Sequence record: MG752970.1
Length of the DNA: 64,000 nt
Reading direction: 5' to 3' (one strand)
This document shows positions 28,709-41,745 of this stretch, one piece after another. A program made the translations under genes and the position numbers. The first letter of the stretch is position 1; each line of letters starts with the position of its first letter. The notes under the pieces were generated by a model. The model saw nothing but the letters and a program-made list of their open reading frames with translations, did not search any database and was not told the DNA's origin.

Positions 28709-28730
28709 AAAGGGCTCCTAGGAGCCCTTT
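28709..28730. terminator. palindromic bidirectional terminator
   Basis: AAAGGGCTCCTAGGAGCCCTTT between convergent genes. Confidence 0.75.
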
Positions 28731-28748: not shown

Positions 28749-29081
28749 TTAGTGAATGTATGTTCCAGCAGGAACTTCAGCGTTCTCGCCTGGAAGATAT
28801 GAAGCGGCTTCTTCGATTTGTTTGATCAATGCCATCTTTTGTTGGCGCTCACGATTCAATTCTTGATACGCGATAGCTGCATCCGTTTTGGACTGATGCA
28901 GCTCACCTTCGAGCTGTCGAACCATACCCTGCAGAACCTTCTGATTTGCCAGCAGCTCATCCACCTTTTGAATCAATTCCTTAGAATCAGTCAGAGACAG
29001 CTCCAGCTTTTTGGAATTGTCGTTGGAAGCTGCATGTTCTTGAATAGCTTCATACGCAAAATCGATCATCGCGATCTCCAT
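28749..29081 (-). CDS. coiled-coil hypothetical protein
   Basis: heptad-rich 110 aa; candidate TTGTTC-18-TAGAAT promoter at 29097-29126 (minus). Confidence 0.7.
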   Translation of the reverse strand: MEIAMIDFAYEAIQEHAASNDNSKKLELSLTDSKELIQKVDELLANQKVLQGMVRQLEGELHQSKTDAAIAYQELNRERQQKMALIKQIEEAASYLPGENAEVPAGTYIH

Positions 29082-29127: not shown

Positions 29128-29907
29128 TTACATGTGAACTGGTTTATTAGCAGTTGCCACCATGATTACATCTGCAGCATGTCCTGATTTGAAGATAAGT
29201 CTGTACTTTCCAGGATATGCAACTCCATCTCTACCAACTACAACAGAGTCAGCATGAGAAACATTTTCTCTGAATGCTTTCTTGCATTGCTCAATGATGA
29301 TCTTCATGATGCGTTCCTTGTCACCATTCTGACCAAACGCAGTTCCGATGATCATAGCAATCGGACCTTTAATATCTGAATCACCAATGATGCTCTTGTG
29401 TAGTGTGTAGTTCGTTTTAACCTCAATTCTGCCAGGTGCAACTTCTGATAAAGCCGAATTAGCACTTTGAATTCCGCCCTTGTACAGAACCTTTTTATCT
29501 GGGGCAGCTCCAAGCTTGTTATGTTGCTTTGCAATCGCCGCAAACGTTAGAGCTAGATTACGAAGATCAGTTTCTGGTGCTTGACCTACTGGCATTTTTC
29601 CAAATAAATGACTGTAGTCAATCGAAGTTTCCAGCTCAGATTCCGGATTTGCTGGTTGCTCAGGTTGTGCTTGTTGTTGAAACTGCGGATCAACCTGAGG
29701 AAGTTGCTGTGGCTGTTGAGCTTGTTGCTGAGCTGGCTGTTGTGCAGGAGCAGTCTGTTGAACTTGCTGTGTTTGCTGTACAGGGGCCTGCTGGACAGGT
29801 TGCTGGGGCGCTTGGACCTGGGTTTGTTGTGGGGCTGCAGCCGGCTTAGTGTATGCCTGCTTTAGTACAGATTTCCCATCTTCTTGTAGAATGTCATCGA
29901 CTTTCAT
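29128..29907 (-). CDS. Gln/Pro/Ala-rich late protein, possible internal virion protein
   Basis: MKVDDILQE N-term, QAP-rich linker, TAAATA box at 29936-29941. Confidence 0.75.
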   Translation of the reverse strand: MKVDDILQEDGKSVLKQAYTKPAAAPQQTQVQAPQQPVQQAPVQQTQQVQQTAPAQQPAQQQAQQPQQLPQVDPQFQQQAQPEQPANPESELETSIDYSHLFGKMPVGQAPETDLRNLALTFAAIAKQHNKLGAAPDKKVLYKGGIQSANSALSEVAPGRIEVKTNYTLHKSIIGDSDIKGPIAMIIGTAFGQNGDKERIMKIIIEQCKKAFRENVSHADSVVVGRDGVAYPGKYRLIFKSGHAADVIMVATANKPVHM

Positions 29908-29948
29908 GGTTTATTCCTTAAGTTTTTCCATGAATTATTTATCGAGTT

Positions 29949-30632
29949 TTACTTAATACCGATGACCATATAACGATCATACACGTTAGGAAACTCCATA
30001 GTTCCTTGAAATTCAACAGATGATAGATTTAGCTTGTCTGCCAAATTTTCCACCGATGAGCAAACATTTATGTGATCTTCAGGACCCGTGTAATTATTGC
30101 TCTGCGCAATGACAATCGAACCAGGTGCTACGGCATCCAGCCAGGAATAGTCTTTAAAATGTTCACATGATGTATTGATCACAATGTCCGATTTAGCCGT
30201 TGTTTCCATTGCATAAGGATGGAAAACATCTAGATCCAAGAACTCAAATTTATGCACATTGCATAGCGCACGATTTATGTGCTCAGCAAATCTCTTACAT
30301 CTAGCGTCTTTATCTATCACAGTGTAGTGGCTTATGTAGTTGTCTACGGCCAATTCAGCACAGATAGATGGCAATGTACCTAACCATCCACCTAAAATCG
30401 TGATGCGGTATTTCTTATCCCATCCGAAATTATCATTACCAAATATAAAATTTTCCAGTTTGTTTGCAAGCCATATCTTGCTGGCAAGTTGACCCCTACT
30501 TAAGGCGTCACGTATTTCATCAAATGCGATTTCTGGATTTGGCTGATAGAAATAGTCCATGATGTCAGTAATTCTATTGACACTTAATGAACTCCAGCAC
30601 AGCACCTCATTTACATTCGTATTTTCTATCAT
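29949..30632 (-). CDS. class I SAM-dependent methyltransferase-like protein
   Basis: ITILGGWLG glycine loop, VIDKD, DIVINTSCEH. Confidence 0.6.
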   Translation of the reverse strand: MIENTNVNEVLCWSSLSVNRITDIMDYFYQPNPEIAFDEIRDALSRGQLASKIWLANKLENFIFGNDNFGWDKKYRITILGGWLGTLPSICAELAVDNYISHYTVIDKDARCKRFAEHINRALCNVHKFEFLDLDVFHPYAMETTAKSDIVINTSCEHFKDYSWLDAVAPGSIVIAQSNNYTGPEDHINVCSSVENLADKLNLSSVEFQGTMEFPNVYDRYMVIGIK

Positions 30633-31330
30633 ACTAATACATCCGGATATTGTTTAATAAATTGCTTTTTAAGCCAATTGAAATCGTTAATCTTGACCAT
30701 TTTCTTGAGATCATTTCGGTATAGGCCCCCATATTCAGCTCCAAATTCGGCTCCTTCTAAAACATATTTGCCAAATTCTTCAGTACCTCCGATATTTCTC
30801 CAAATTGTTAATCGCTCTTCTGTTTCAGAATCAACAGACCCAGAGATAACTCGTGAGGAGAGCTTTGCACATTCTCTGAATGCAGCTCTCCATGCTCTAA
30901 ATGGATCAGAATTAAATCGGTTGATTGACGCAACTTGATCATGGAAATGATTTAATCCTTGAACCGATGTCGTATAATCCGGAAGCGTTTTATCAAGCTT
31001 TAACACCAAGCTTTTTGTCATAAGCTTTACACCACCATTTCCATACTCAAGTCCATTAACGGAGTTGCGACTTTTCCACACGTGAATCCATTTGTTATAA
31101 TGAGGAGGAATTGGGTCGTCAAAATTAAAGGTGTCAAGCACTTCGTTATCGCCATCAACCACGTAAAAGAATTCGGTATGAGCGGTATCTGCTACCGCTT
31201 CATGCGCATTTTGAATTCCCTTTACCCCTTTAACTCGCATTGCCCATGGACAAATTTCGGTTAATTTTCTGAAATTTGCATCCGCGTTTGGTTCATCATA
31301 GGAAAGTTGAATTACATCTACCAGGCTCAT
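30629..31330 (-). CDS. GT-A-like glycosyltransferase (paralog of 32735..33688)
   Basis: DVIQLSYDEP...RVKGVKGI.NAH...VVDGD (DxD), GNGGVKL, AWRAAFRE. Confidence 0.65.
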   Translation of the reverse strand: MSLVDVIQLSYDEPNADANFRKLTEICPWAMRVKGVKGIQNAHEAVADTAHTEFFYVVDGDNEVLDTFNFDDPIPPHYNKWIHVWKSRNSVNGLEYGNGGVKLMTKSLVLKLDKTLPDYTTSVQGLNHFHDQVASINRFNSDPFRAWRAAFRECAKLSSRVISGSVDSETEERLTIWRNIGGTEEFGKYVLEGAEFGAEYGGLYRNDLKKMVKINDFNWLKKQFIKQYPDVLV

Positions 31331-32760
31331 CTGAATTCTAACTCACACTGTCTAATAAAATCTGAAAGTTCTGGAAACACTTCAGCCACATTCAAACCTC
31401 TGTTCTTCTCGTATTGTTGATAATAGAGAACAAAGTTTTGACGGTTCAAAATCACATTTGAATTTTCTGTCATCATGAATTCGCAGAGCCGCTGGACCTG
31501 ATCTATCTCTTCCAAATAAAAGCGCCCGGCTTTATGATGAGAATTTGTTCTATTACGGTCAGTAACATACTTGGTCCACTCTGCCGCATATTTATGCTTG
31601 AGATCATCTGTAAGATTGTTTATGTTAAGGAACTCTGGCCATCTAACATATGCAATCATCATAGGCGTTCTATTATGTGAATCCTCTTCATTGTATGTGC
31701 ACCGTAGATTGTAGATAAAATCTAAGAAATCCATAAATGATGGGGCCGACAACAGATTCGTGGTGACCATGAAACTTAATCTAACCGCACTTGGTGTATT
31801 CTCAAGAACATATTTGCAATTTTCTTGGAATTGTCCGTAGTCCATCCCAAATCTAATAAACTCTGCTTGCTCGCCGGATGCTTCGCAACTGGTATAAATT
31901 TGGAATTCTTTTATTTTACCTTGCAGCTTATTAGCGTAATCTACAAGCTTCTGAATTAACTTCTGAGGCACGCATAAGTTGGTATTAATCGCTATCGTTA
32001 GATCATCTCTGGGGTGCTCTAGAACATACTCAAGCACCTTCCATGTATGCTTGGACAGTAGCGGCTCGCCACCCGTAATTCTGAAAGTGTCAAGAGTTGG
32101 ATACAGTTCTGGCCACCAATTCCAAAATGCCTCCACATATGGATTGTAATCATCCTTATGAATTGGAATTCGTTTCGTTTGACGTGAATAATTTAGGTCA
32201 TACATTGTATAATTGTTCATTAGTTTGTATGGACCATGATGTTCAATTTCTTCCATCCAACGAGACGAAACTTCTGGAGAACAATACGTACATTTCAGGT
32301 TGCACGTTGAATCAAATGCCACCTCCATATAAGTTGGATTGATGTTTTCACCCAACTTAGATTTTAATACCACATCCAGATTTGGCCATGCCCAATTGTC
32401 TGCCGACTTGTAAGTACGATCACTTATGAAGTCCTTTCCTAAATCCTCAATGTTCCAACAATATCCACACTCACGTGGTCTTTCACCATTTAGCATCTGC
32501 TCACGCGCTTCTATTTTAGTAGCGGTGTTATGTATTCCAGTTGGATTTAATAAATCTTCGTCTGTTATTTTATGAGGAGATGGGTGGTGACATGAATGAG
32601 TATATCCATTGTATAGTGTAATAGTAGACTGCAGCCACTTGGCTAAACACATTGAGGGAGAAACCTCATTAAGAGATTTCCCTATTTCTTTTAGACGTAT
32701 AACCCGTTTCTGATTGTAATTAACGGGATCTAGCTTACCTTCGTCCATTGATGACCTCAA
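31327..32760 (-). CDS. radical SAM protein with Cys-rich N-terminal (SPASM/twitch-like) region
   Basis: CNLKCTYC (CxxxCxxC), ITGGEPLL, INTNL; extra CHH and CGYC motifs. Confidence 0.85.
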   Translation of the reverse strand: MRSSMDEGKLDPVNYNQKRVIRLKEIGKSLNEVSPSMCLAKWLQSTITLYNGYTHSCHHPSPHKITDEDLLNPTGIHNTATKIEAREQMLNGERPRECGYCWNIEDLGKDFISDRTYKSADNWAWPNLDVVLKSKLGENINPTYMEVAFDSTCNLKCTYCSPEVSSRWMEEIEHHGPYKLMNNYTMYDLNYSRQTKRIPIHKDDYNPYVEAFWNWWPELYPTLDTFRITGGEPLLSKHTWKVLEYVLEHPRDDLTIAINTNLCVPQKLIQKLVDYANKLQGKIKEFQIYTSCEASGEQAEFIRFGMDYGQFQENCKYVLENTPSAVRLSFMVTTNLLSAPSFMDFLDFIYNLRCTYNEEDSHNRTPMMIAYVRWPEFLNINNLTDDLKHKYAAEWTKYVTDRNRTNSHHKAGRFYLEEIDQVQRLCEFMMTENSNVILNRQNFVLYYQQYEKNRGLNVAEVFPELSDFIRQCELEFR

Positions 32761-33688
32761 TTTCTGTCACTAGAGGATTCAGTGATCTAACTGGGGTATC
32801 AATAATCCTCTTAAACATTTCGCTCTGATGAGCATCAAAATATGGCACCCAAATTCCGGTTTTTAATTGGATTTCATCACCATATTCTACAATAAGGTCA
32901 TACAGATCTTCACTGTATCCATCTTTAGTCAGTTCATTAAATTTCTTTGTTTTCCAAAATTTAGTAAACCAATCATACGAACTAATATTTGCAAGGTCGA
33001 ATTCACCAGAGAGCGTCATCACCATACCCATACGCGCACCAAGAATTGACCATAATCCATTCTCAACATCGGCTCCTATCATAAGCCATGTTAGAAGGCG
33101 TTTGAAATTTTTGGCATGCAGTCGTTCTTCCAATTGTTGTGGATCTACAAGATTTCCATCATGTAGAGTCATCTTAACCCCTTCACGAAATGCCGCTCTA
33201 AATGCCTGATATGGAGAACCGTTGGTTTTGGTAGTTGAGTAAACATTATTCATTTGAACATATTTGCTATCCCAACAAAAATCTAGCTTATACTTTGACT
33301 CTTCATTCTCAACGTCCTTATGCTCGTGTGTGCGCATATTGTTGACGAAATCTTTAGTCCATAATTTTAGACCACCATTACCATAGATAAGACCATTCAC
33401 GTAATTTACTGATGCCCAACTAAATGTGCAATCAGATAAATGATCTGGGATGTCCATTTCAATATCGGTGAACTCATCATGCACGATAGTATCTCCATCG
33501 ACAGTGATGAATCTATCCGTCTGAGAAAGTTCTGCACACTTCTTATGTGCAGCGTCAAATCCCTTTACGCCATGAACGCGCTGCGCCCATGGAAATTTAG
33601 TAAGAAGATTTGCCCAATTTTTTTCGCGTTCAGGTTCATCGAAGCTGATGTAGAACACGTCGTATTCGGTAATATGTGTTTTAGCCAT
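32735..33688 (-). CDS. GT-A-like glycosyltransferase
   Basis: DVFYISFDEP...RVHGVKGFDAAH...TVDGD, GNGGLKLW, AFRAAFRE. Confidence 0.65.
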   Translation of the reverse strand: MAKTHITEYDVFYISFDEPEREKNWANLLTKFPWAQRVHGVKGFDAAHKKCAELSQTDRFITVDGDTIVHDEFTDIEMDIPDHLSDCTFSWASVNYVNGLIYGNGGLKLWTKDFVNNMRTHEHKDVENEESKYKLDFCWDSKYVQMNNVYSTTKTNGSPYQAFRAAFREGVKMTLHDGNLVDPQQLEERLHAKNFKRLLTWLMIGADVENGLWSILGARMGMVMTLSGEFDLANISSYDWFTKFWKTKKFNELTKDGYSEDLYDLIVEYGDEIQLKTGIWVPYFDAHQSEMFKRIIDTPVRSLNPLVTEIEVINGRR

Positions 33689-34235
33689 TGTCTATTTCTA
33701 AGCTGTAGCTGTCGAAAAATTTTCGAGTAAGGATTGAGAAATTGGATTTGTCAAAGTTGAAATCATCTTCAAGTGATTCATCTTGAACAAGTTTTTGTGC
33801 GTCGAGCACGTATGTATGAATTAACTTATTCGGTTCCTCATATTCTGTAACAAACACCATAAGTTGCGATGAATGCTTGTCGAGAAACGTATCCATGATA
33901 GACATGGCATAGTCCTTAACATCGGGATCCAATTTAAATGTGATCTTATTTCCAGTTATTTTAATTTCCAACTGAGCATCATCAACTTTCTTATCAACCT
34001 TTAGAAAAGTTACATTATGATTCCACTTGGTTTTTGCCTTCTTAACAATTCTATATTCACCTGGATTTGCCTGGAAAATTACGTACTCATGATCAAACAC
34101 GTGGGGTGTGTGAATGAATGTATTTCCTAATTCTTCGGTAAGTTCTATGTATGCTAGAGTGGGATCAGAAGGTTTAACAGGAGTAATACGAGAGAATGAA
34201 TTTCTTTCGGTATTTATAATGCCATAGTATCTCAT
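33681..34235 (-). CDS. hypothetical protein in glycosylation block
   Basis: 184-aa ORF overlapping both neighbours. Confidence 0.8.
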   Translation of the reverse strand: MRYYGIINTERNSFSRITPVKPSDPTLAYIELTEELGNTFIHTPHVFDHEYVIFQANPGEYRIVKKAKTKWNHNVTFLKVDKKVDDAQLEIKITGNKITFKLDPDVKDYAMSIMDTFLDKHSSQLMVFVTEYEEPNKLIHTYVLDAQKLVQDESLEDDFNFDKSNFSILTRKFFDSYSLEIDNG

Positions 34236-35080
34236 CTCTTCACCTTTCTTTCAAGCGTTTTGATGATGTCATCGGTTAGAAATGATTTGTCGTGATAGTG
34301 AACCGGATAATTTTGCTTAAAGTTACCAATGTAGAGTTCACAATCATTGTTGAAGAAAACTGGAACATGCTCAACCCATTCTTCAGGAATAACAGTCTCT
34401 TCAGAATTCCAATTCTGAAGTTCGGTTTTCATGTGCACAAATTTCGGATGAAAGATTGATTTCTTTATTGATTCTATTTCCATTACTTTTGATGCAACAC
34501 CGAAAATAACATCAGTGCTTAATTCAGCTGGACGAGTTTTGGCATTAAGAAACATCTCAGACATAAGCTTCCAGTTCTTAAACCACATCTCAATATATTT
34601 GAAGAAATTGAAAGTCCATTCCGTCTTCTTAAAATAGAAGAAAGCGGAATATGAATTGTGAAGAAGATTGTCAGTGAAAACTTTTCGATAATAATCGTTG
34701 GTTACCAATTCGTGTCTGAAGTTTACAACATCCTTACACATCACCGCATCTTGACGACTTAGCTCATCCCACCATTTAGTGATATCAACCGTGAATAACA
34801 TGTCAGCATCCAATTTTATTGTCTCATCGTATGGCGACATGTAGATGCTCTTCCATTCATTGTGCAGCTTCCAGGTTCTCCCGTCTGCATCGTCTCCCCA
34901 TGGAATTTCGATTATCTTATCAAATGCCCATGCATATTCTTCAGGAACCTTATATCCTTCCGTGATCCCAATTGAAAGTTTGTCGTATTTTGATTGAGAT
35001 GCTTTTAGACTCAGAGCCAACGCATATGCCATTCGGACATATTGATCTCCCTGCGCAAACGTAAAGAATCCTCTACTCAT
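34232..35080 (-). CDS. glycosyltransferase-like (GT8/mannosyltransferase-type DxD)
   Basis: SPYDETIKLDADMLF; C-terminal HYH; paralog of 35077..35946. Confidence 0.65.
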   Translation of the reverse strand: MSRGFFTFAQGDQYVRMAYALALSLKASQSKYDKLSIGITEGYKVPEEYAWAFDKIIEIPWGDDADGRTWKLHNEWKSIYMSPYDETIKLDADMLFTVDITKWWDELSRQDAVMCKDVVNFRHELVTNDYYRKVFTDNLLHNSYSAFFYFKKTEWTFNFFKYIEMWFKNWKLMSEMFLNAKTRPAELSTDVIFGVASKVMEIESIKKSIFHPKFVHMKTELQNWNSEETVIPEEWVEHVPVFFNNDCELYIGNFKQNYPVHYHDKSFLTDDIIKTLERKVKR

Positions 35081-35946
35081 GCGTATAGCTCCATGATTTT
35101 TTCATATTGCTGAGAAATTGAAAATTTATTCATGACATGTACATTTGTGTTTCTCAACCTTACCAAATTTGGTCCTTGATTTTGCTGAGAATAAAACATC
35201 ATCTTCACTGAATCCTTTTCAACTTCAAGCAGTGAATCCCTGTCGATTGCTGTTACTATCGTCGGAGTAGGAAGAGATTTTACTGAATTTGATTCCATAA
35301 AATTAGACAGAATATGAATAGCAATTGAAAATGCAAAATCATTTCTGTACATTGATTTCGAAAATCCGTAAATGAGCTTGTAGTACCACCAATTTTGACG
35401 GATATAATTCACTAAATCAAATAGAATTCTTGTCTGATCTGTCTTCTTAAAATAGATCAGCGTTGCCCAGTACATTCTAATACCCGTTTGATTCAATCGA
35501 AGATCACTACCGGTTAACCGGCAGAAGTCCAATGAGCACGCAGATTTATTAATCAGCAAATCCTCATTTGTACCCCAAGCACTGTTTAGAGAATCATTTT
35601 GAATCAAATAGTCTGAATCCACCACAATCGTTTCGTCAAATGGTGACAAATTGTATGCATCAAATCGGTTTAGATTGTTAAAGTTGGCGACATGCGTTAT
35701 GTCTGTTCCATCTCTATAGACACGTGAATTCTCTAATGGTTTATTTTCGGTCAGAATGATATGATCAAAAGATTTTTCAATCTGATTTCTAATATCAGGT
35801 TGCTCATTTAAACTCGCTTCATCTGTCACCAAAGCAGCAGAAATGCCACCCATGAAATGCTTTGCCATAACTGCAGAGCACGTAGCAATTTTGGTATATG
35901 CTAACTTGCCATTGTTGTGGGCGAAATACAGCAGACCTTTACTCAT
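35077..35946 (-). CDS. glycosyltransferase-like (GT8/mannosyltransferase-type DxD)
   Basis: SPFDETIVVDSDYLI, RNDFAFSIA, HVMNK. Confidence 0.65.
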   Translation of the reverse strand: MSKGLLYFAHNNGKLAYTKIATCSAVMAKHFMGGISAALVTDEASLNEQPDIRNQIEKSFDHIILTENKPLENSRVYRDGTDITHVANFNNLNRFDAYNLSPFDETIVVDSDYLIQNDSLNSAWGTNEDLLINKSACSLDFCRLTGSDLRLNQTGIRMYWATLIYFKKTDQTRILFDLVNYIRQNWWYYKLIYGFSKSMYRNDFAFSIAIHILSNFMESNSVKSLPTPTIVTAIDRDSLLEVEKDSVKMMFYSQQNQGPNLVRLRNTNVHVMNKFSISQQYEKIMELYA

Positions 35947-36310
35947 TGTCTATTAGCTTCAGTGTTTGTCTTGCTCGACGAATTTTTGAATACTCTACGA
36001 AATACGCATTCATAGAGTCATGGTATTTGGTGGTAATTGTCTTAAGAAATTCTTTTGGATCATCTATAAGAATAGGATTTTCATTTAGATCTATTAGATA
36101 GAAAGATGCCTTCTTACTTCTAACATGAAAATCCGTAAACATAATCAGTTCAGGTGTGATGTCGAAAGATCCCCCATTTATAGCAATGGTTAAATTTTCT
36201 TTCAGCTTATGATGAGCCGCATCTTTCTGATTTTTGGAATGAAATTTGAACTTGGAAAAGTCGAGGGCCGCCTGCAACTTCTCATCAACGAGAACGGTTT
36301 TGTCGGTCAT
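35939..36310 (-). CDS. hypothetical protein, first gene of glycosylation operon
   Basis: 123-aa ORF; GGAG RBS; TAAATA box 36372-36377. Confidence 0.8.
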   Translation of the reverse strand: MTDKTVLVDEKLQAALDFSKFKFHSKNQKDAAHHKLKENLTIAINGGSFDITPELIMFTDFHVRSKKASFYLIDLNENPILIDDPKEFLKTITTKYHDSMNAYFVEYSKIRRARQTLKLIDNE

Positions 36311-36383
36311 TAGATTGTAAACTCCGAAGGGAATTGGTTGCTAGACGAATGCTAGCAACCATGAACTTACTTATTTACGATAT

Positions 36384-37553
36384 TTACATCGAGCCAGCTT
36401 GCGTGGCCGTTGGATATGGAATCTCTGGATTATTCATGTAAATCGGTGCTACCTTAACCAAAGTTGCTTGAGATTTCAAAGTACCTTCAACTGATCCACC
36501 ATATGCAGATCCTGAGTTATCAGTGAATGTCACCAAGAATCTAATCTGGGTTCCACTTCCTTCAGATCTAACATCAACGGTGAATGCCATTGCCGCACTC
36601 GTCCACGAGTAGATTCTCTGATATGATGTCGTTAGATCATAGTATCCAACTGGAGAACCCGTAACTCCCGCGGAGTTAGATGTTGCGTGGCGTTGGAATA
36701 GCAATGTTCCGATGCTTGACAGTTGATTTGCCCATACTACATCATGCGAGTCAACAGGATTGGACAAAGAGAAATTGAATTTAATTTGTCCCTGTGTGTT
36801 CCAATAGGCACGTGCAGAATTAATATCCGGATACGTGAACAGTATTTCCTGGGTTATAGTACCTGTCCAGGCAGTTGTTCTTACTCGTGTAGTAGTAGAA
36901 TCTGAGAATGACTCACGAGTGCTGGTGTTTATGTTGTTGCAGTTTGTTACCACCAAGTTTGCCATTGCAGCGAGCGCGGTATATTTGTTACTTAGTGCCC
37001 ATAGACCAACGAAACCTGGATTTTCAGATTGATATAAGAAATCTAGATTTAATAGCTGAGTGTCAAACGTTGTTCCCTGATGTCCACAAATATTCTGCAG
37101 CGCGTTTGTCATGATAGCCCAATCAGATGCTACAGCATGGCGTCCAACAACTTGCGGTATAGCAACCTGGTTATAACCACGCGAATCGCTTCCATACGGA
37201 TACGGAGTCGTGTAGATGGAATTAATTATGGTAGCAAACTGATTATATTCGCTAGCATCAGCCCAATATACCTGACCTCCCAATGGAACCCATTTAGTAC
37301 CATCGTACAGATAAAGTTGCTTCGTGTTGTAATTGTAGTAAACCTGACCAGCAGTAGGATTTGCTGGTGGATTATAATCCGCAAAGTGTTCCATTAGGTG
37401 CAACAAGTTCTCTTGTAGCTGTTGACCCCAATTGAATCTACCTCTTCCGGTGATTACCAGAGTGGTAGTGGTTATGTCTTGCGAATTTGGTTGAACTTGA
37501 AATGGTGATTTTACAGCACTGTTAGTCCAGTGCATTAAATAGGTGCCTGCCAT
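36384..37553 (-). CDS. virion structural protein (tail/baseplate associated)
   Basis: GQQLQENLLHLMEHFA and GQVYYNYNTKQLYLYDGTKW motifs typical of phage tail proteins; AAGGAG RBS before MAGTYL. Confidence 0.65.
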   Translation of the reverse strand: MAGTYLMHWTNSAVKSPFQVQPNSQDITTTTLVITGRGRFNWGQQLQENLLHLMEHFADYNPPANPTAGQVYYNYNTKQLYLYDGTKWVPLGGQVYWADASEYNQFATIINSIYTTPYPYGSDSRGYNQVAIPQVVGRHAVASDWAIMTNALQNICGHQGTTFDTQLLNLDFLYQSENPGFVGLWALSNKYTALAAMANLVVTNCNNINTSTRESFSDSTTTRVRTTAWTGTITQEILFTYPDINSARAYWNTQGQIKFNFSLSNPVDSHDVVWANQLSSIGTLLFQRHATSNSAGVTGSPVGYYDLTTSYQRIYSWTSAAMAFTVDVRSEGSGTQIRFLVTFTDNSGSAYGGSVEGTLKSQATLVKVAPIYMNNPEIPYPTATQAGSM

Positions 37554-37584
37554 ATTTTCTCCTTCGCGCCGGCTCACAATAGGC

Positions 37585-37617
37585 AAAGGCTCCCTGCCGG
37601 TGAAAGTGGGAGCCTTT
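37585..37617 (-). terminator. intrinsic terminator
   Basis: AAAGGCTCCC...GGGAGCCTTT after tail tube gene. Confidence 0.6.
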
Positions 37618-37630
37618 TAGGTCTAAAATA

Positions 37631-38212
37631 TTAGTTTGCTACGTTACCGCCAAGAGCAGTACCAAGAGCATTCTTGTTATTAACTTCGCGTGCGTGGTCG
37701 AAACGGATAGTCAGTTGAATTGTAACTGCACCGGAATCTTGATAGTCCAGATCTCCGCGGTCAACGGCTTGCAGCCAGCAACCTTCGAGGATCCATTCTT
37801 CTAGAACGGTTTCATTACCATCAAGCATTTCCAATCTTGCACCAAACTTATAAGCTGACGCAGTTGGAGCGGTGTTCATCCATGGACCATCAGCTCCGAT
37901 CAGTTTTTGTTGGCGTTCTTGCTGTTCACCAATAACGGCGGCAGCCAAACCAGTAACATCATCTTCAACTGAAACGTTTAGAGGATCCCACGTATACTTA
38001 CCAGCAACATAAGCGGTAGTTGTATAACGGTGGATAGGAACTTCTTCAAATGACAGATTTGGTCTTGAAGTTGTAACGACCTGCATCGACAAGTCTGCAG
38101 TATTAGCTCCCGAAGCCATGTTCAGGAACGTGAGTCTCCACTTATTGCGATGCTTTGGGTGTAGATAACCTGTACCTACACCAGGAATTCCCATTTGACT
38201 GAGCGTGGACAT
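37631..38212 (-). CDS. gp19: tail tube protein (T4 gp19-like)
   Basis: PKHRNKWRL..RPNLSFEEV..YVAGKYTWDPL..EDD..W.LEGCW..LDY..IRFDHA; next to sheath. Confidence 0.85.
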   Translation of the reverse strand: MSTLSQMGIPGVGTGYLHPKHRNKWRLTFLNMASGANTADLSMQVVTTSRPNLSFEEVPIHRYTTTAYVAGKYTWDPLNVSVEDDVTGLAAAVIGEQQERQQKLIGADGPWMNTAPTASAYKFGARLEMLDGNETVLEEWILEGCWLQAVDRGDLDYQDSGAVTIQLTIRFDHAREVNNKNALGTALGGNVAN

Positions 38213-38281
38213 GTTTAAGAGTCTCCATAAAAGCTTTTACGATAATCTATTTATCGTTTATATGGAGCAAAACTATTGGGA

Positions 38282-39076
38282 TTACATTACCTCTTTCTTC
38301 AATATTTCTTCCACAGCTTCATAGAGTTTAGGAAGATTAAAGCTACCAATTTCATCCGCGCTGTAATACAAGCTCAGGAATGAAGACAAATCTACACGTA
38401 GATATGGTCTTTCGGCCGATATCATGAGCTCACAGTTACCCGGAATATGCTGAAGCGATCCAAAATTCTCAAAATCGTATTTCTCAAATTCCAAAGTCTT
38501 CATAAATTTGTATGCTTCGTATAGGAACTGATCAACGTCCGACTCATCTATTCCAGCATTCTTACAATCCCGCAGAAATTCATTTTTATCAAACTTTAGA
38601 GGTTCGATATCGTTCATTAACTTGATGCATCTATCCCAAGCAACAATACGCTTATCATTTCTGTCGAATACCATCTTATTAAATCTACCCACAGGGTTGA
38701 TCTCATACATATCCCTGTTCTTGGGTGAAGCTATAAGCCATGAATCTTCAGGAAGAAAAATCATGTTTAATCTTCCATACATTCCTATTTTTCCTGCTCC
38801 CTTTTGCGCAAATAAGCAGTTATTTCTGAAATGTTTAACACCAAATTCGTGCTCAGCAAATAGATTAAAGAAATTAGTTTCAGCGAATGTTGACGTTCTG
38901 GGTTTTCGATCTTTACGAATTACTTCGAAACTGGATACGGTGCTGTAATCATTTACACCGCGAAACCACGGCATGCCATTTGTTTTCTGAAGAAATGGTT
39001 TGAATTGACGAATTCGATCGAACAATTTCTTCTTTGCATCTTCTGGTACATCTTCGTAAAGATCTTTAAATTTCAT
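38282..39076 (-). CDS. hypothetical late protein, possible ART-like fold
   Basis: MKFKDLYE N-term; WFRG..RKDRKP..LFA..YG..IF; TAAATA box 39105-39110. Confidence 0.7.
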   Translation of the reverse strand: MKFKDLYEDVPEDAKKKLFDRIRQFKPFLQKTNGMPWFRGVNDYSTVSSFEVIRKDRKPRTSTFAETNFFNLFAEHEFGVKHFRNNCLFAQKGAGKIGMYGRLNMIFLPEDSWLIASPKNRDMYEINPVGRFNKMVFDRNDKRIVAWDRCIKLMNDIEPLKFDKNEFLRDCKNAGIDESDVDQFLYEAYKFMKTLEFEKYDFENFGSLQHIPGNCELMISAERPYLRVDLSSFLSLYYSADEIGSFNLPKLYEAVEEILKKEVM

Positions 39077-39111
39077 TATCACGTTTCCATTATTATGATG
39101 TGATTATTTAT

Positions 39112-40089
39112 TCACTTTACAATTGCATTGCAAAACCACTTACAAAATTGTTTTAATCCATCATCAAGATTTGTATATTGAATCTCACCAATTCGTTCTT
39201 CTGTTTTTGATACATCACAATGCGTCTTCCACACATCACCAGTCTGCGGAGGAAGATCCACTATTGTCGCCTGCTTCTGTACGTGATTTTCTATTATTCC
39301 AACAAAGTCCCGCAAATTCTCAGATACTGGGTTACCAATGTTATAAACGTTGCAGGCTTCTGGATCTGTGAGCTGCTTATCAATCAACCTACACACCATC
39401 TCAATAGCATCATCAATGAATGTAAATGATCTGTATTGATTTCCTCTATTAAAAAGTTTTATAATTTTGTCATTTAAGCATGCATTGGTGAACAACCATG
39501 GTGCCATGTCGGGTCGACCATATGGGCCATACACGGTAAAGAATCTAAAACCTATGCAATTCATGTCATACATCTTAGAGTATGAATGCGCCATCAACTC
39601 ATTGGCTTTCTTGGTGGCAGCATAGTAGCTAACGGGCTGATCTGTTGCTGCATCTTCTCTGTCATATCCTTCGAATGTATGTCCGTACACACTCGAGCTA
39701 CTAGCATAGAAAAAATTCTTAACTCCGTAGATGTGACAACATTCTAGAACGTTAGCAAATCCCACCAAATTAGATTCTGTTGTTTTTTCTGGTGAAATAA
39801 TTGATTTACGAATACCAGATTCTGCTGCCAAATGAATCACCATATCTGGTTTGATTTCTTTGAATGCATCCATCAATGCATTCATATCGGCAATGTTCAA
39901 CGTAAATAGAGCAAATGGATTCTTCCAGGCAGCACTTGTCAAATTTACCATTTGCTTTCTTAAATCGGTGACCTCAGAAGTATTTTCTCCTCTGTCTATT
40001 CCATAAACCTGGAATTTTTGGCTCATCAGCAGACGTCTTACTAATTGTGATCCTATAAATCCATAACAACCGGTGACTAGAACTCTCAT
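39112..40089 (-). CDS. NAD-dependent NDP-sugar epimerase (UDP-glucuronate 4-epimerase/WcaG-like extended SDR)
   Basis: VTGCYGFIG, HLAA, SSSSVYG, YAATKKANE (YxxxK), RFFTVYGPYGRPDMA. Confidence 0.9.
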   Translation of the reverse strand: MRVLVTGCYGFIGSQLVRRLLMSQKFQVYGIDRGENTSEVTDLRKQMVNLTSAAWKNPFALFTLNIADMNALMDAFKEIKPDMVIHLAAESGIRKSIISPEKTTESNLVGFANVLECCHIYGVKNFFYASSSSVYGHTFEGYDREDAATDQPVSYYAATKKANELMAHSYSKMYDMNCIGFRFFTVYGPYGRPDMAPWLFTNACLNDKIIKLFNRGNQYRSFTFIDDAIEMVCRLIDKQLTDPEACNVYNIGNPVSENLRDFVGIIENHVQKQATIVDLPPQTGDVWKTHCDVSKTEERIGEIQYTNLDDGLKQFCKWFCNAIVK

Positions 40090-40130
40090 ATGTTCTCCAT
40101 TTTGTCGATTACATATTTACCAGGCATGAA

Positions 40131-40154
40131 AAAGGGCAGCCTAGGCTGCCCTTT
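40131..40154. terminator. palindromic terminator
   Basis: AAAGGGCAGCCTAGGCTGCCCTTT after sheath gene. Confidence 0.75.
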
Positions 40155-40173: not shown

Positions 40174-41745
40174 TTAGTGGATTTGATCTGCTGTATTTAC
40201 AACAGTGATTGGGATGTAGATGAATTCTGCCGCCTTAGTTGGCTTCAGTGCAACATCAATCCACAATTGGTTGTTGTCAATACGGACTGGAGTGTTGTTT
40301 GACTCATTACAGATTGTAGCGAAGTCATATAGTCCACGCTTAACCATAATATCAGCGAGGAAGCTATCAACCGTAGTTTTCAGATCAGCACGCGTAATTG
40401 GGTCATTTGGACGGAATACGAATGGCATTGCAGCCTTACGTAAAGCACGCTTGATGTACATCAAGAGACGCGAAACGTTAATGCGATCCATTGCTGAATC
40501 GGCAACCGCAGAAGTCTTCTGACCCCATACCAATAGACCACGAGTTGGGAATGCAACGATCGGGTTAATATTGGTAAAGTCTTGATACAGATCGTCTCGT
40601 TGACCTTGATTCAATGCAACCGATTGGAATGCGGTGGCAGTTCCAAGAGTTCCAGTAACATATCCAACGTCATCCACGTGGGTAACAACACCATTTCTGA
40701 CACCAGCTGGAGCGAACCATACTTCGGAAATATTGTCAGAATACGCAATTGTCTTCAACGCAACAGACGATGATGGAAGAACTATTGACTTACCATCAAG
40801 ATTTGATGTTAAAGCGTTACCATACCAATAACCAATTGATGTTGATTTTTGGCGAGCGGTTGTATTTGACCATGCCTTAACATCAGCTGAAGACATATTC
40901 ATTGGTGTATCACCAATAACGAATGCCTCATCAAGAACTTCTTGTGATAGTGAAACCATATCTACAGCGAGTTCTGGATATCCAGGGCATACGATCAAAT
41001 TGTATTCATAAACCTCTGAACGAACATCCTGTTGGCTATTGACAACTGCCTTCAAAGCTGTAACTACTGATGCACGTTTCGCTGCTTGGTCTACACCAAG
41101 TGGTTCTGGACCTGTGGTTACCGTCATCACAATAGTGAATGCGGAACCAGATGCAAATGGTGTTGAACCTGCAGTAATAGTGAAGTTGATTTTATTGCTA
41201 GTGAAAGCCGTACCAACAACCCCAGCTCCAATTGAACCGGATACTGAGCCAGTTACTGAGAAAGCCGTTGCGCTTGAGAATGATACCGTGATTGTTTCTG
41301 AAACCGTTGAAGATCCACCGGTGATTGAACCAATCGTTCCATTGCCAGTACCGGTAAAATTAGGTGTTGCTGGGGTGACGGTAACGGTTGGGACGTCTGC
41401 TAGATCCACATCAGCACGAACAACATATGCGCGATTACCTACACGCAGAAACTCATTAAGAGTTGCAACGCCATATTCATTACGGCAGTCGCCATGTAGT
41501 TGGTTACCAGAACTATCAGTACGGAATGCTGGGAGGCCGTACAATTCTAGTGATTGACGGATTGATGTGACTGTGCGAATTACAGCGCTTTCAGCGGTGC
41601 CTAAAGCGGTGGTGATTCCATCGGTCTGCTTTTTGTTTGCCTGCGTTGCCACGAAGATCAACGGAAGCGTTGGAGCAGCCGCCGGAACGTAAAAACTTTG
41701 ATCGTCGATCGTTACGCTAGTTCCTGGTGATACTAGTGATGCCAT
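40174..41745 (-). CDS. gp18: tail sheath protein (T4 gp18-like)
   Basis: LVSPGTSVT..D.S, WFAPAG..RG, QRDDLY..INPI..WGQKT..DRINVSRL, KPTKAAEFIYI. Confidence 0.95.
   Translation of the reverse strand: MASLVSPGTSVTIDDQSFYVPAAAPTLPLIFVATQANKKQTDGITTALGTAESAVIRTVTSIRQSLELYGLPAFRTDSSGNQLHGDCRNEYGVATLNEFLRVGNRAYVVRADVDLADVPTVTVTPATPNFTGTGNGTIGSITGGSSTVSETITVSFSSATAFSVTGSVSGSIGAGVVGTAFTSNKINFTITAGSTPFASGSAFTIVMTVTTGPEPLGVDQAAKRASVVTALKAVVNSQQDVRSEVYEYNLIVCPGYPELAVDMVSLSQEVLDEAFVIGDTPMNMSSADVKAWSNTTARQKSTSIGYWYGNALTSNLDGKSIVLPSSSVALKTIAYSDNISEVWFAPAGVRNGVVTHVDDVGYVTGTLGTATAFQSVALNQGQRDDLYQDFTNINPIVAFPTRGLLVWGQKTSAVADSAMDRINVSRLLMYIKRALRKAAMPFVFRPNDPITRADLKTTVDSFLADIMVKRGLYDFATICNESNNTPVRIDNNQLWIDVALKPTKAAEFIYIPITVVNTADQIH

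Follow-up and report, generated by a model that had tools for sequence, protein, structure and literature searches.

A conserved module of predicted glycosyltransferases, a radical SAM enzyme and a fiber-like protein among the tail genes of Ralstonia jumbo phage RsoM2USA: a candidate route to virion fiber glycosylation

Glycosylation of virions by virus-encoded enzymes is established for the chloroviruses and, as cited in PMC12619734, for the mycobacteriophages. In chloroviruses the capsid glycan is built by A064R, in which a sugar methyltransferase domain is combined with two glycosyltransferase domains (PMC9614988). The mycobacteriophage glycosyltransferases decorate virion structural proteins (Freeman et al. 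2023, as cited in PMC12619734), the targets given in that source being the C-termini of capsid and tail tube subunits of actinobacteriophages. A related kind of gene neighborhood has been noted in marine phages: the tail-fiber hypervariable region of pelagimyophages holds genes of glycosyltransferase family 8 (GT8) and radical S-adenosylmethionine (SAM) cassettes for which modification of the host O-chain was proposed (PMC7029224), and T4-like marine viral genomes carry up to 12 radical SAM genes, which were linked to iron-sulfur metabolism (PMC5332604). Here we present a computational analysis of a tail-region operon of Ralstonia phage RsoM2USA (MG752970.1) and of the fiber-like gene that precedes it, both located in the window, that is, the whole stretch of 64,000 nucleotides of this record that was analyzed. 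We read the operon and the fiber-like gene as a conserved module whose soluble predicted enzymes would build a tailored oligosaccharide on a virion fiber protein, a reading to which we assign a probability of roughly 0.4.

RsoM2USA is a 343.8-kb jumbo myovirus infecting Ralstonia solanacearum and was placed beside Xanthomonas phage XacN1 (PMC8504454). Window position 29900 corresponds to position 215900 of the record, and the segment 29900-40100 is 100% identical to RsoM2USA. All genes in and around the operon are labeled 'hypothetical protein' in GenBank, and the published names for the region are confined to ORF356 ('structural protein'), ORF359 (sheath) and some baseplate genes; ten abundant virion gel bands were identified by mass spectrometry in the same study, ORF356, ORF359 and ORF361 being among them (PMC8504454). 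Our searches agree with these assignments on the minus strand, where ORF359 (40174-41745) is the tail sheath (Pfam Phage_sheath_1C, E 2e-13) and ORF356 (37631-38212) matches phrog_4542 'tail tube protein' (E 7e-41), both standing outside the module as its context. The local order is sheath, a short-chain dehydrogenase/reductase (SDR) gene (ORF358), ORF357, tube, the fiber-like ORF355 and then the operon, so that the transferase genes lie among structural genes.

The operon runs from 36310 to 29949 on the minus strand and comprises eight overlapping open reading frames (GenBank ORF354 to ORF347). Four of them encode predicted transferases, one pair of GT8-fold paralogs and one pair of GT-A-fold paralogs with a DxD motif; the others encode a radical SAM enzyme, a protein that is weakly methyltransferase-like and two proteins without assignment. 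The earlier note on this DNA had described a tightly overlapping eight-gene operon containing two pairs of related transferases, and both points were verified: neighboring genes overlap by 4-14 bp, ORF353 and ORF352 share 22% identity (E 8e-7) and ORF350 and ORF348 share 33% (E 1e-32). Single-sequence searches of Pfam, PHROGs and NCBIfam gave no match for seven of the eight operon proteins and recognized the radical SAM enzyme alone; the transferase calls were therefore tested by family profiles and structure models. No hydrophobic segment or sign of membrane association was found in any protein when this was checked across the module.

The evidence that ties these enzymes to a virion component comes from ORF355 (36384-37553, minus strand), a fiber-like predicted virion protein whose N-terminal fiber-adaptor domain spans about residues 5-95 and whose C-terminal domain, which we name C355, comprises about 215 amino acids. 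The N-terminal domain matches phrog_15511 and phrog_14394 (virion structural protein) and is common to proteins with tail-collar or fiber C-termini and to the PA5oct 'tail fiber protein', and in relatives C355 is also found near the N-terminus of fiber-like proteins of 1000-2854 amino acids. A relative of ORF350 is present on at least 597 IMG/VR viral contigs, of which 80 were fetched, and the window proteins were mapped onto 83 related loci. In all 68 loci with room for it, C355 lies at most three genes upstream of the first GT8 gene (the ORF353 homolog), and an ORF354 homolog, which almost always follows the C355 gene directly, was found in 68 of 68 loci, always between the two. The reciprocal search, made with one single C355-only protein as query, recovered the enzymes downstream in 52 of the 53 IMG/VR loci with room. 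The putative fiber domain C355 is thus invariably linked to the enzyme genes in the loci compared, and on account of this two-way linkage the functional unit is one of nine genes, ORF355 to ORF347, rather than the eight of the operon.

The order of the module is fixed among relatives: one to four fiber-like genes are followed by the homologs of ORF354, ORF353 (present in 77 of the 83 loci) and ORF352, the ORF351 position and the ORF350 homolog, and then by a variable tail of ORF348 and ORF347 and/or one to six radical SAM genes, sometimes with an SDR. The conserved core can accordingly be written C355-354-353-352-351-350, of which no description was found in the literature searched with the terms used. 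The families are large, with 2486 relatives of ORF350 (about 50% identity), 640 of ORF352 and more than 6258 of the radical SAM enzyme, most of them without a Pfam assignment; the listed ORF350 relatives bear no informative name and many reside on contigs 100-360 kb long. For six of the nine families in the module, neither a function nor a described relative is known. Many module contigs derive from aquatic metagenomes, some with thyX and MoxR/VWA-type neighbors. The earlier note had suggested checking whether the block co-occurs across jumbo phages. The block recurs in the IMG/VR contigs, and among 50,697 phage records tblastn searches with ORF350, ORF352 and the C355 domain matched RsoM2USA as the only isolate. 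In XacN1, the closest isolate (L185, record 230701-245231), no enzyme module follows the tube gene, the next genes being one for a hypothetical protein of 654 amino acids and one for head completion; this implies that the module is not common even to the proposed genus. We tentatively propose, with the odds somewhat against the full statement, that many uncultivated large myoviruses, with RsoM2USA as their sole cultured representative, share a dedicated glycan pathway for the C355 fiber tip or shaft, in which the constant six-gene core would produce the base glycan and a rapidly swapping set of radical SAM, methyltransferase-like, second GT-A and SDR enzymes would diversify that glycan.

If the module glycosylates a fiber, the transferases would use nucleoside diphosphate (NDP) sugars in the cytoplasm of the infected cell, and the C355 domain of ORF355, or the fiber bearing C355, would receive the glycan either ahead of tail assembly or in the course of it. 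Tailoring of the sugars would fall to the radical SAM enzyme or enzymes and the methyltransferase-like ORF347, in RsoM2USA possibly with the separately transcribed SDR ORF358, which might also tailor or might supply an unusual NDP-sugar, while ORF354 and ORF351 may serve as adaptors or chaperones. A constant core with a variable tailoring set would then give chemically different fiber surfaces in different phages. The main rival, which we regard as rather unlikely, is remodeling of the host receptor: acting from the cytoplasmic side of the membrane, the enzymes would modify a host envelope glycan recognized by C355, such as lipopolysaccharide (LPS) core, O-antigen or exopolysaccharide precursors, and would thereby block superinfection or keep progeny virions off the debris of lysed cells. 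Enzymes co-evolving with a receptor-binding domain would explain the strict C355 linkage, and the counts of 68/68 and 52/53 fit this explanation as well as they fit fiber glycosylation. Host modification was also what had been proposed for the pelagimyophage GT8 genes found with tail fibers and radical SAM cassettes (PMC7029224). Against it, the module holds no membrane-spanning or Gtr-type component and no flippase, all of its proteins being soluble, and the same core occurs in phages of very different environments, whose hosts would be expected to differ in their envelope glycans. A sub-threshold CBM_11 match of ORF355 within C355 would favor recognition of a glycan; a role of C355 as a carbohydrate-binding module was tried as a candidate and rejected, since the match appeared in one of 18 family members and lay below threshold. 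The profile search with C355 returned no significant match in the PDB, and no source supplies a name for its relatives.

Transferases could alternatively act on nucleic acid by glycosylating modified bases, the adduct then being tailored by the methyltransferase-like and radical SAM enzymes. Modification of DNA by phage glycosyltransferases has ample precedent (as cited in PMC12619734), two thymidylate-synthase-type genes are reported elsewhere in the RsoM2USA genome, far outside the window (PMC8504454), and thyX stands near the module on the opposite strand in one marine clade. Hypermodification of DNA is nevertheless highly improbable, because about 140 viral loci show no link to base-modifying or DNA-metabolism genes: no hydroxymethylase, kinase, DNA-binding or DNA-metabolism component was seen in or next to the module. 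Moreover, its invariant partner is a fiber domain, it sits among fiber and tail genes with their promoter-like element, and the nearest structural neighbors of its transferases act on proteins, protein-bound glycans or cell-wall polymers. The preference expressed beforehand for a virion or host-surface target over DNA modification is upheld by these observations. In the marine clade itself (e.g. L030 11756-14147, L035 11239-14141), the module is followed by a convergent thyX, an opposite-strand ORF347 homolog and genes of DUF2201/VWA and MoxR-type AAA kinds, and the L030-type loci suggest a T4-like marine myovirus backbone.

Turning to the enzymes, the first pair consists of ORF353 (35077-35946, minus strand, 289 amino acids) and ORF352 (34232-35080, minus strand, 282 amino acids). 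The profile of their 37-member family matches glycogenin (E 2e-5) with D91 and D93 of ORF352 aligned to the glycogenin DxD motif; both residues are invariant in the joint alignment of 37 sequences that includes ORF353, and H216 is conserved in at least 90%. The AlphaFold2 (AF2) model of ORF352 has a predicted local distance difference test score (pLDDT) of 92, and its Foldseek neighbors are GT8/GT24 enzymes, namely glycogenin, the UGGT catalytic domain, LgtC, LARGE1 and XXYLT1, at probability 1.0, E about 1e-7 and template modeling (TM) scores of 0.4-0.55. By model and profile, ORF352 and ORF353 are predicted GT8-fold relatives that stand outside the curated family, in keeping with the pair of DxD GT8-like paralogs first proposed. 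They resemble the retaining GT8 glycosyltransferases in fold, in the alignment of DxD and in the conserved downstream histidine, and differ from them in an identity of 12-16%. Several members of the set matched act on proteins or protein-bound glycans; the set also includes the lipooligosaccharide galactosyltransferase LgtC, which counts for remodeling of the host receptor. Bacterial GT8 enzymes include LPS-core transferases, a further point on that side.

The second pair is formed by ORF350 (32735-33688, minus strand, 317 amino acids), a predicted GT-A-fold DxD transferase with a C-terminal helical domain, and ORF348 (30629-31330, minus strand, 233 amino acids), its paralog without the C-terminal extension. 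No Pfam, NCBIfam or PDB sequence match was obtained for either, and no precomputed Pfam domain is recorded on the listed relatives. The AF2 model of ORF350 (pLDDT 90) matches mostly GT-A glycosyltransferases among its top 30 Foldseek hits (probability 0.94-1.0), including SunS/ThuS, RmlT, TarP, domain 1 of PBCV-1 A64R and hyaluronan synthases; SunS, RmlT, TarP, A64R and hyaluronan synthase reach 0.98-1.0. The triad D64-G65-D66 is invariant in 36 sequences including ORF348 and is located at the end of the model strand 59-64, so the claim of two GT-A-like paralogs stands on a fold match, at a TM score of about 0.3, together with an invariant DxD. The two pairs thus amount to four soluble transferases of the GT-A class, predicted to be metal-dependent, two having the GT8 fold and two being GT2-like. 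In relatives, ORF350-like and ORF348-like domains are fused in proteins of 538 amino acids and ORF348-like and ORF347-like domains in a 719-amino-acid protein of L011; by this comparison the fusions tie ORF350, ORF348 and ORF347 functionally.

These features bring the module nearest to the capsid glycosylation of chlorovirus PBCV-1 (A064R and the methyltransferase A061L), which we consider its closest documented analogue. In PBCV-1, virus-encoded soluble cytoplasmic transferases of GT-A type build and methylate a virion-protein glycan, the role predicted for the module; the glycosyltransferase-glycosyltransferase-methyltransferase arrangement of A064R is mirrored by the ORF350-ORF348 and ORF348-ORF347 fusions, and A64R domain 1 is a neighbor of ORF350 at the level of fold only (about 10% identity). 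The differences are equally evident: the PBCV-1 host is eukaryotic, the target is the capsid and not a fiber, there is no counterpart of the GT8 pair, the radical SAM enzyme, ORF354 or ORF351, and the glycans are proven there while the module is known from its genes. From the mycobacteriophage system the module differs in that the 50,697 phage records yielded no sequence relative of its proteins besides RsoM2USA. The pelagimyophage and T4-like marine loci share with it the same kind of neighborhood, that of fibers, GT8-type transferases and radical SAM cassettes; the genes were noted there in passing, with the conserved core and its linkage left undefined, and the comparison is one of descriptions.

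The radical SAM enzyme ORF349 (31327-32748, minus strand, 473 amino acids) scores 316.1 bits on NF033640 against a cut-off of 170 with the full model covered, and invariant in 24 diverse sequences are C149/C153/C156 (CX3CX2C), C34/C53/C94/C97 and the SAM-binding G226-G227-E228, so that by sequence criteria it is a full-length member of the NF033640 family of radical SAM enzymes with an N-terminal twitch-type auxiliary cluster. This substantiates the radical SAM call made at the outset. The start was taken as ATG, an alternative TTG at 32760 being less likely; the PDB profile search returned no significant match, and no mention of NF033640 was found in the literature search. In relatives the core can be followed by as many as six radical SAM genes, and B12-binding or SPASM domains are present in some of these. 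Such numbers, together with the presence of the peptide S-glycosyltransferases SunS and ThuS among the top fold matches of ORF350 and of an Asp/Asn-hydroxylase-like gene in one bacterial cluster (L092), would be expected if the radical SAM enzymes, and perhaps ORF347, modified the fiber directly by epimerization, C-methylation or cross-linking as in the maturation of ribosomally synthesized and post-translationally modified peptides, the glycosyltransferase folds being minor decoration or scaffolds. We consider such direct tailoring of the protein quite unlikely. Of 45 well-covered non-identical loci, 14 contain no detectable ORF349-type radical SAM gene and retain ORF348, ORF347 and the four-transferase core, while the others hold one to six; as the radical SAM genes are dispensable, protein tailoring may be an addition but cannot be the core function. 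C355 also has no conserved cysteine or other obvious radical-chemistry motif, and SDR enzymes of sugar-nucleotide type are coupled to the module. In several modules the SDR or radical SAM genes are followed by the gene for a recurring protein of about 430 amino acids with no CX3CX2C motif and no PDB match (L129 14921-16210, with relatives in L057, L046, L047 and L054).

Assignments for the remaining enzymes and small proteins are less firm. ORF347 (29949-30632, minus strand, 227 amino acids) is of Rossmann type and possibly a SAM-dependent methyltransferase-like protein: the best PDB match of its family profile is the class I methyltransferase MJ0882 at a weak E of 0.29, Pfam MTS matches one of 18 family members (E 0.0018), and G81, W83 and D107 are invariant, with G81 and D107 placed as nucleotide-binding motifs would be. 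The methyltransferase-like label given to it previously is consequently retained in a weakened form. ORF354 (35939-36310, minus strand, 123 amino acids), the conserved small protein whose gene separates the C355 gene from the first GT8 gene, falls into three sub-families that are homologous by hhalign (probability 99.9%) and gave no PDB or Pfam match in profile searches. ORF351 (33681-34235, minus strand, 184 amino acids) has a fixed place between the GT8 pair and the GT-A gene, where five sequence families occur that are mutually homologous by hhalign (probability 95-99.9%), and its profile search found no significant PDB match.

Homologs of part of the module are encoded by bacteria. ORF350 homologs were found on chromosomal contigs of up to 3 Mb (e.g. 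L110) from metagenome-assembled genomes (MAGs) of Bdellovibrionota and Geminicoccaceae, and in L088 and L090-L092 an ORF347 homolog directly follows the ORF350 homolog with radical SAM genes nearby. The one locus of this kind that was annotated, L092 from a Halobacteriovoraceae MAG, holds SPASM/twitch radical SAM genes, a GT2 glycosyltransferase, a QueC-like ATPase, the Asp/Asn-hydroxylase-like gene and a flavin amine oxidase, and the L088/L090-L092 clusters look like an undescribed cellular pathway akin to the tailoring half of the phage module. Photorhabdus isolates (L119, L120, L122, L125) carry ORF348-like genes. In L120, the one such locus that was annotated, the gene has a GT4 gene on one side and two GT2 genes on the other, after which come a nucleotidyltransferase and an ABC/HlyD exporter pair. 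The GT8 pair, ORF354, ORF351 and C355 were not detected in the chromosomal contexts. By gene context, these relatives support sugar-transfer chemistry and show the predicted GT-A/ORF347/radical SAM part to be older than, and independent of, the association with the fiber. Their polysaccharide-type glycosyltransferase clusters with an ABC/HlyD exporter also count for remodeling of the host receptor. Clusters with exporters, a QueC-like ATPase and an amine oxidase would further suit a free or lipid-linked glycoconjugate, a metabolite or polymer made during infection that modifies neither the virion nor the host receptor, and the six functionally unassigned families out of nine leave room for such a product. 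We consider it very unlikely, given that no exporter or carrier is encoded in the module and that the strict two-way linkage with the fiber domain would be left unexplained.

Expression timing can be approached through the hexamer TAAATA. It is not over-represented in the window overall (43 copies against 61 expected); 20 of the 43 copies are nevertheless located on the sense strand 10-80 nucleotides before start codons, a zone covering 3.7% of positions in which 1.6 copies were expected (P 8e-18), and by this measure it comes first among the 15 hexamers that its letters can form. Copies are located before the sheath, tube, ORF360, giant ORF361, baseplate wedge, SDR and ORF346 genes and also before the operon, where two of them (36381-36386 and 36372-36377, minus strand) stand 62-76 nucleotides upstream of the operon start, the first overlapping the stop codon of ORF355. 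The operon is thus headed by the TAAATA box that had been noticed before. From this shared element, which is like a T4-type late promoter, we infer that the module would be co-expressed late with the structural genes, which counts against remodeling of the host receptor. Exclusion functions are usually early. A scan for sigma-70 promoters gave no enrichment over shuffles, and for RsoM2USA no phage RNA polymerase is reported and no sigma factor is mentioned (PMC8504454). A 9-bp hairpin without a T tract (36336-36360, minus strand), located downstream of the TAAATA boxes and ahead of the ORF354 ribosome-binding site, may be a 5' leader structure of the operon transcript or a terminator of ORF355. 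Across the 83 related loci, 33% of ORF350 homologs and 44% of fiber genes with the N-terminal domain only have TAAATA in the 90 nucleotides upstream, against a background of 19%, a hint that some lineages may possess an internal promoter ahead of the GT-A gene.

ORF358 (39112-40089, minus strand) is an extended-SDR protein, predicted to be an NDP-sugar epimerase or dehydratase, that scores 179.5 bits on PF01370 against a cut-off of 20.9 and 159.6 bits on PF16363; its best PDB match is 5u4q (E 1.4e-64), deposited as a dTDP-glucose 4,6-dehydratase, and all NCBIfam equivalogs remained below cut-off, the best being RmlB-type (138 against 365) and GalE (110 against 262). The earlier note had placed an NDP-sugar epimerase with its own TAAATA between tube and sheath, which is borne out (TAAATA at 40114-40119, minus strand; ORF358 between the sheath gene and ORF357, which precedes the tube gene). 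No counterpart was present in the first 83 related loci, and ORF358 lies outside the conserved module as what appears by gene content to be a lineage-specific addition. ORF358 and ORF357 together look like an insertion between sheath and tube, because these two genes are adjacent in L006, L007 and L010, which show the RsoM2USA order minus the SDR gene and ORF357. A 10-bp GC-rich hairpin (40131-40154, minus strand) directly 3' of the sheath stop codon, resembling the terminator at 28709-28730, probably terminates or attenuates transcription ahead of the epimerase promoter. A link between the module and sugar-nucleotide enzymes is found elsewhere: in seven relatives the radical SAM gene is immediately followed by a translationally coupled SDR gene whose product shares 23% identity with ORF358, and the gene string of L127 ends with a hexapeptide/GMPPB-type gene.

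Some neighboring features are recorded here for completeness of the window. Downstream of the operon are two more minus-strand genes without counterpart in the related loci, ORF346 (29128-29907), which is preceded by a TAAATA of its own (29936-29941) and starts with about 90 amino acids of Gln/Pro/Ala-rich low-complexity sequence, and ORF345 (28749-29081), and the minus-strand unit is closed by a bidirectional terminator hairpin at 28709-28730. The segment 2617-24056 holds at least 31 paralogous genes in tandem, mostly on the plus strand with 4-bp overlaps, for proteins of about 185-220 amino acids (pairwise identity 19-71%); TAAATA precedes several of these genes, which are unrelated to the module, and one member searched against the 50,697 phage records matched RsoM2USA solely.

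Several observations weigh against fiber glycosylation. Glycan, acceptor and enzyme activity are all at the level of prediction. The four transferases fall below Pfam and NCBIfam thresholds; Pfam Glyco_transf_8 (PF01501) matches neither ORF352 nor ORF353 nor any of the 37 family members, and the fold matches of ORF350, weak by TM score, also list sugar-1-phosphate nucleotidyltransferases. C355 has no conserved Ser/Thr-rich stretch, its conserved positions being mostly Trp, Gly and Pro; of the Ser/Thr-rich tail domains said to be nearby, a modest version can be kept, ORF355 being 20% Ser plus Thr with one 30-residue patch that holds 14. ORF355 is unreported in the virion mass spectrometry, which covered the ten most abundant bands without a glycan search (PMC8504454). 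Bacterial chromosomes hold homologs of ORF350, ORF347 and the radical SAM enzyme without a fiber gene, so the chemistry is not fiber-specific, and in relatives TAAATA or TATAAATA is not clearly enriched at the head of the module (18% of ORF354 and C355 genes against 19% background). Finally, linkage to a receptor-binding-type domain fits modification of the host receptor equally well. The original idea of virion decoration therefore survives in part: the enzyme calls hold and the C355 fiber is now a concrete candidate target, while the linkage by itself does not separate that target from the host surface.

Overall, the module probably represents a widespread undescribed phage route for placing sugars onto fibers, or possibly onto the host surface; in the literature searched, no description was found of fiber glycosylation in myoviruses infecting Gram-negative bacteria or of such an enzyme set. 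With it, the radical SAM cassettes that have been known for long from T4-like phages of the sea receive a concrete interpretation, and RsoM2USA, as the sole isolate with the module among the phage records searched, offers a testable system for a large unexplained gene set. If fiber glycosylation is the true function, the surface chemistry of the fiber would be a trait open to evolution in its own right, one that determines adsorption or the evasion of host surface defenses.

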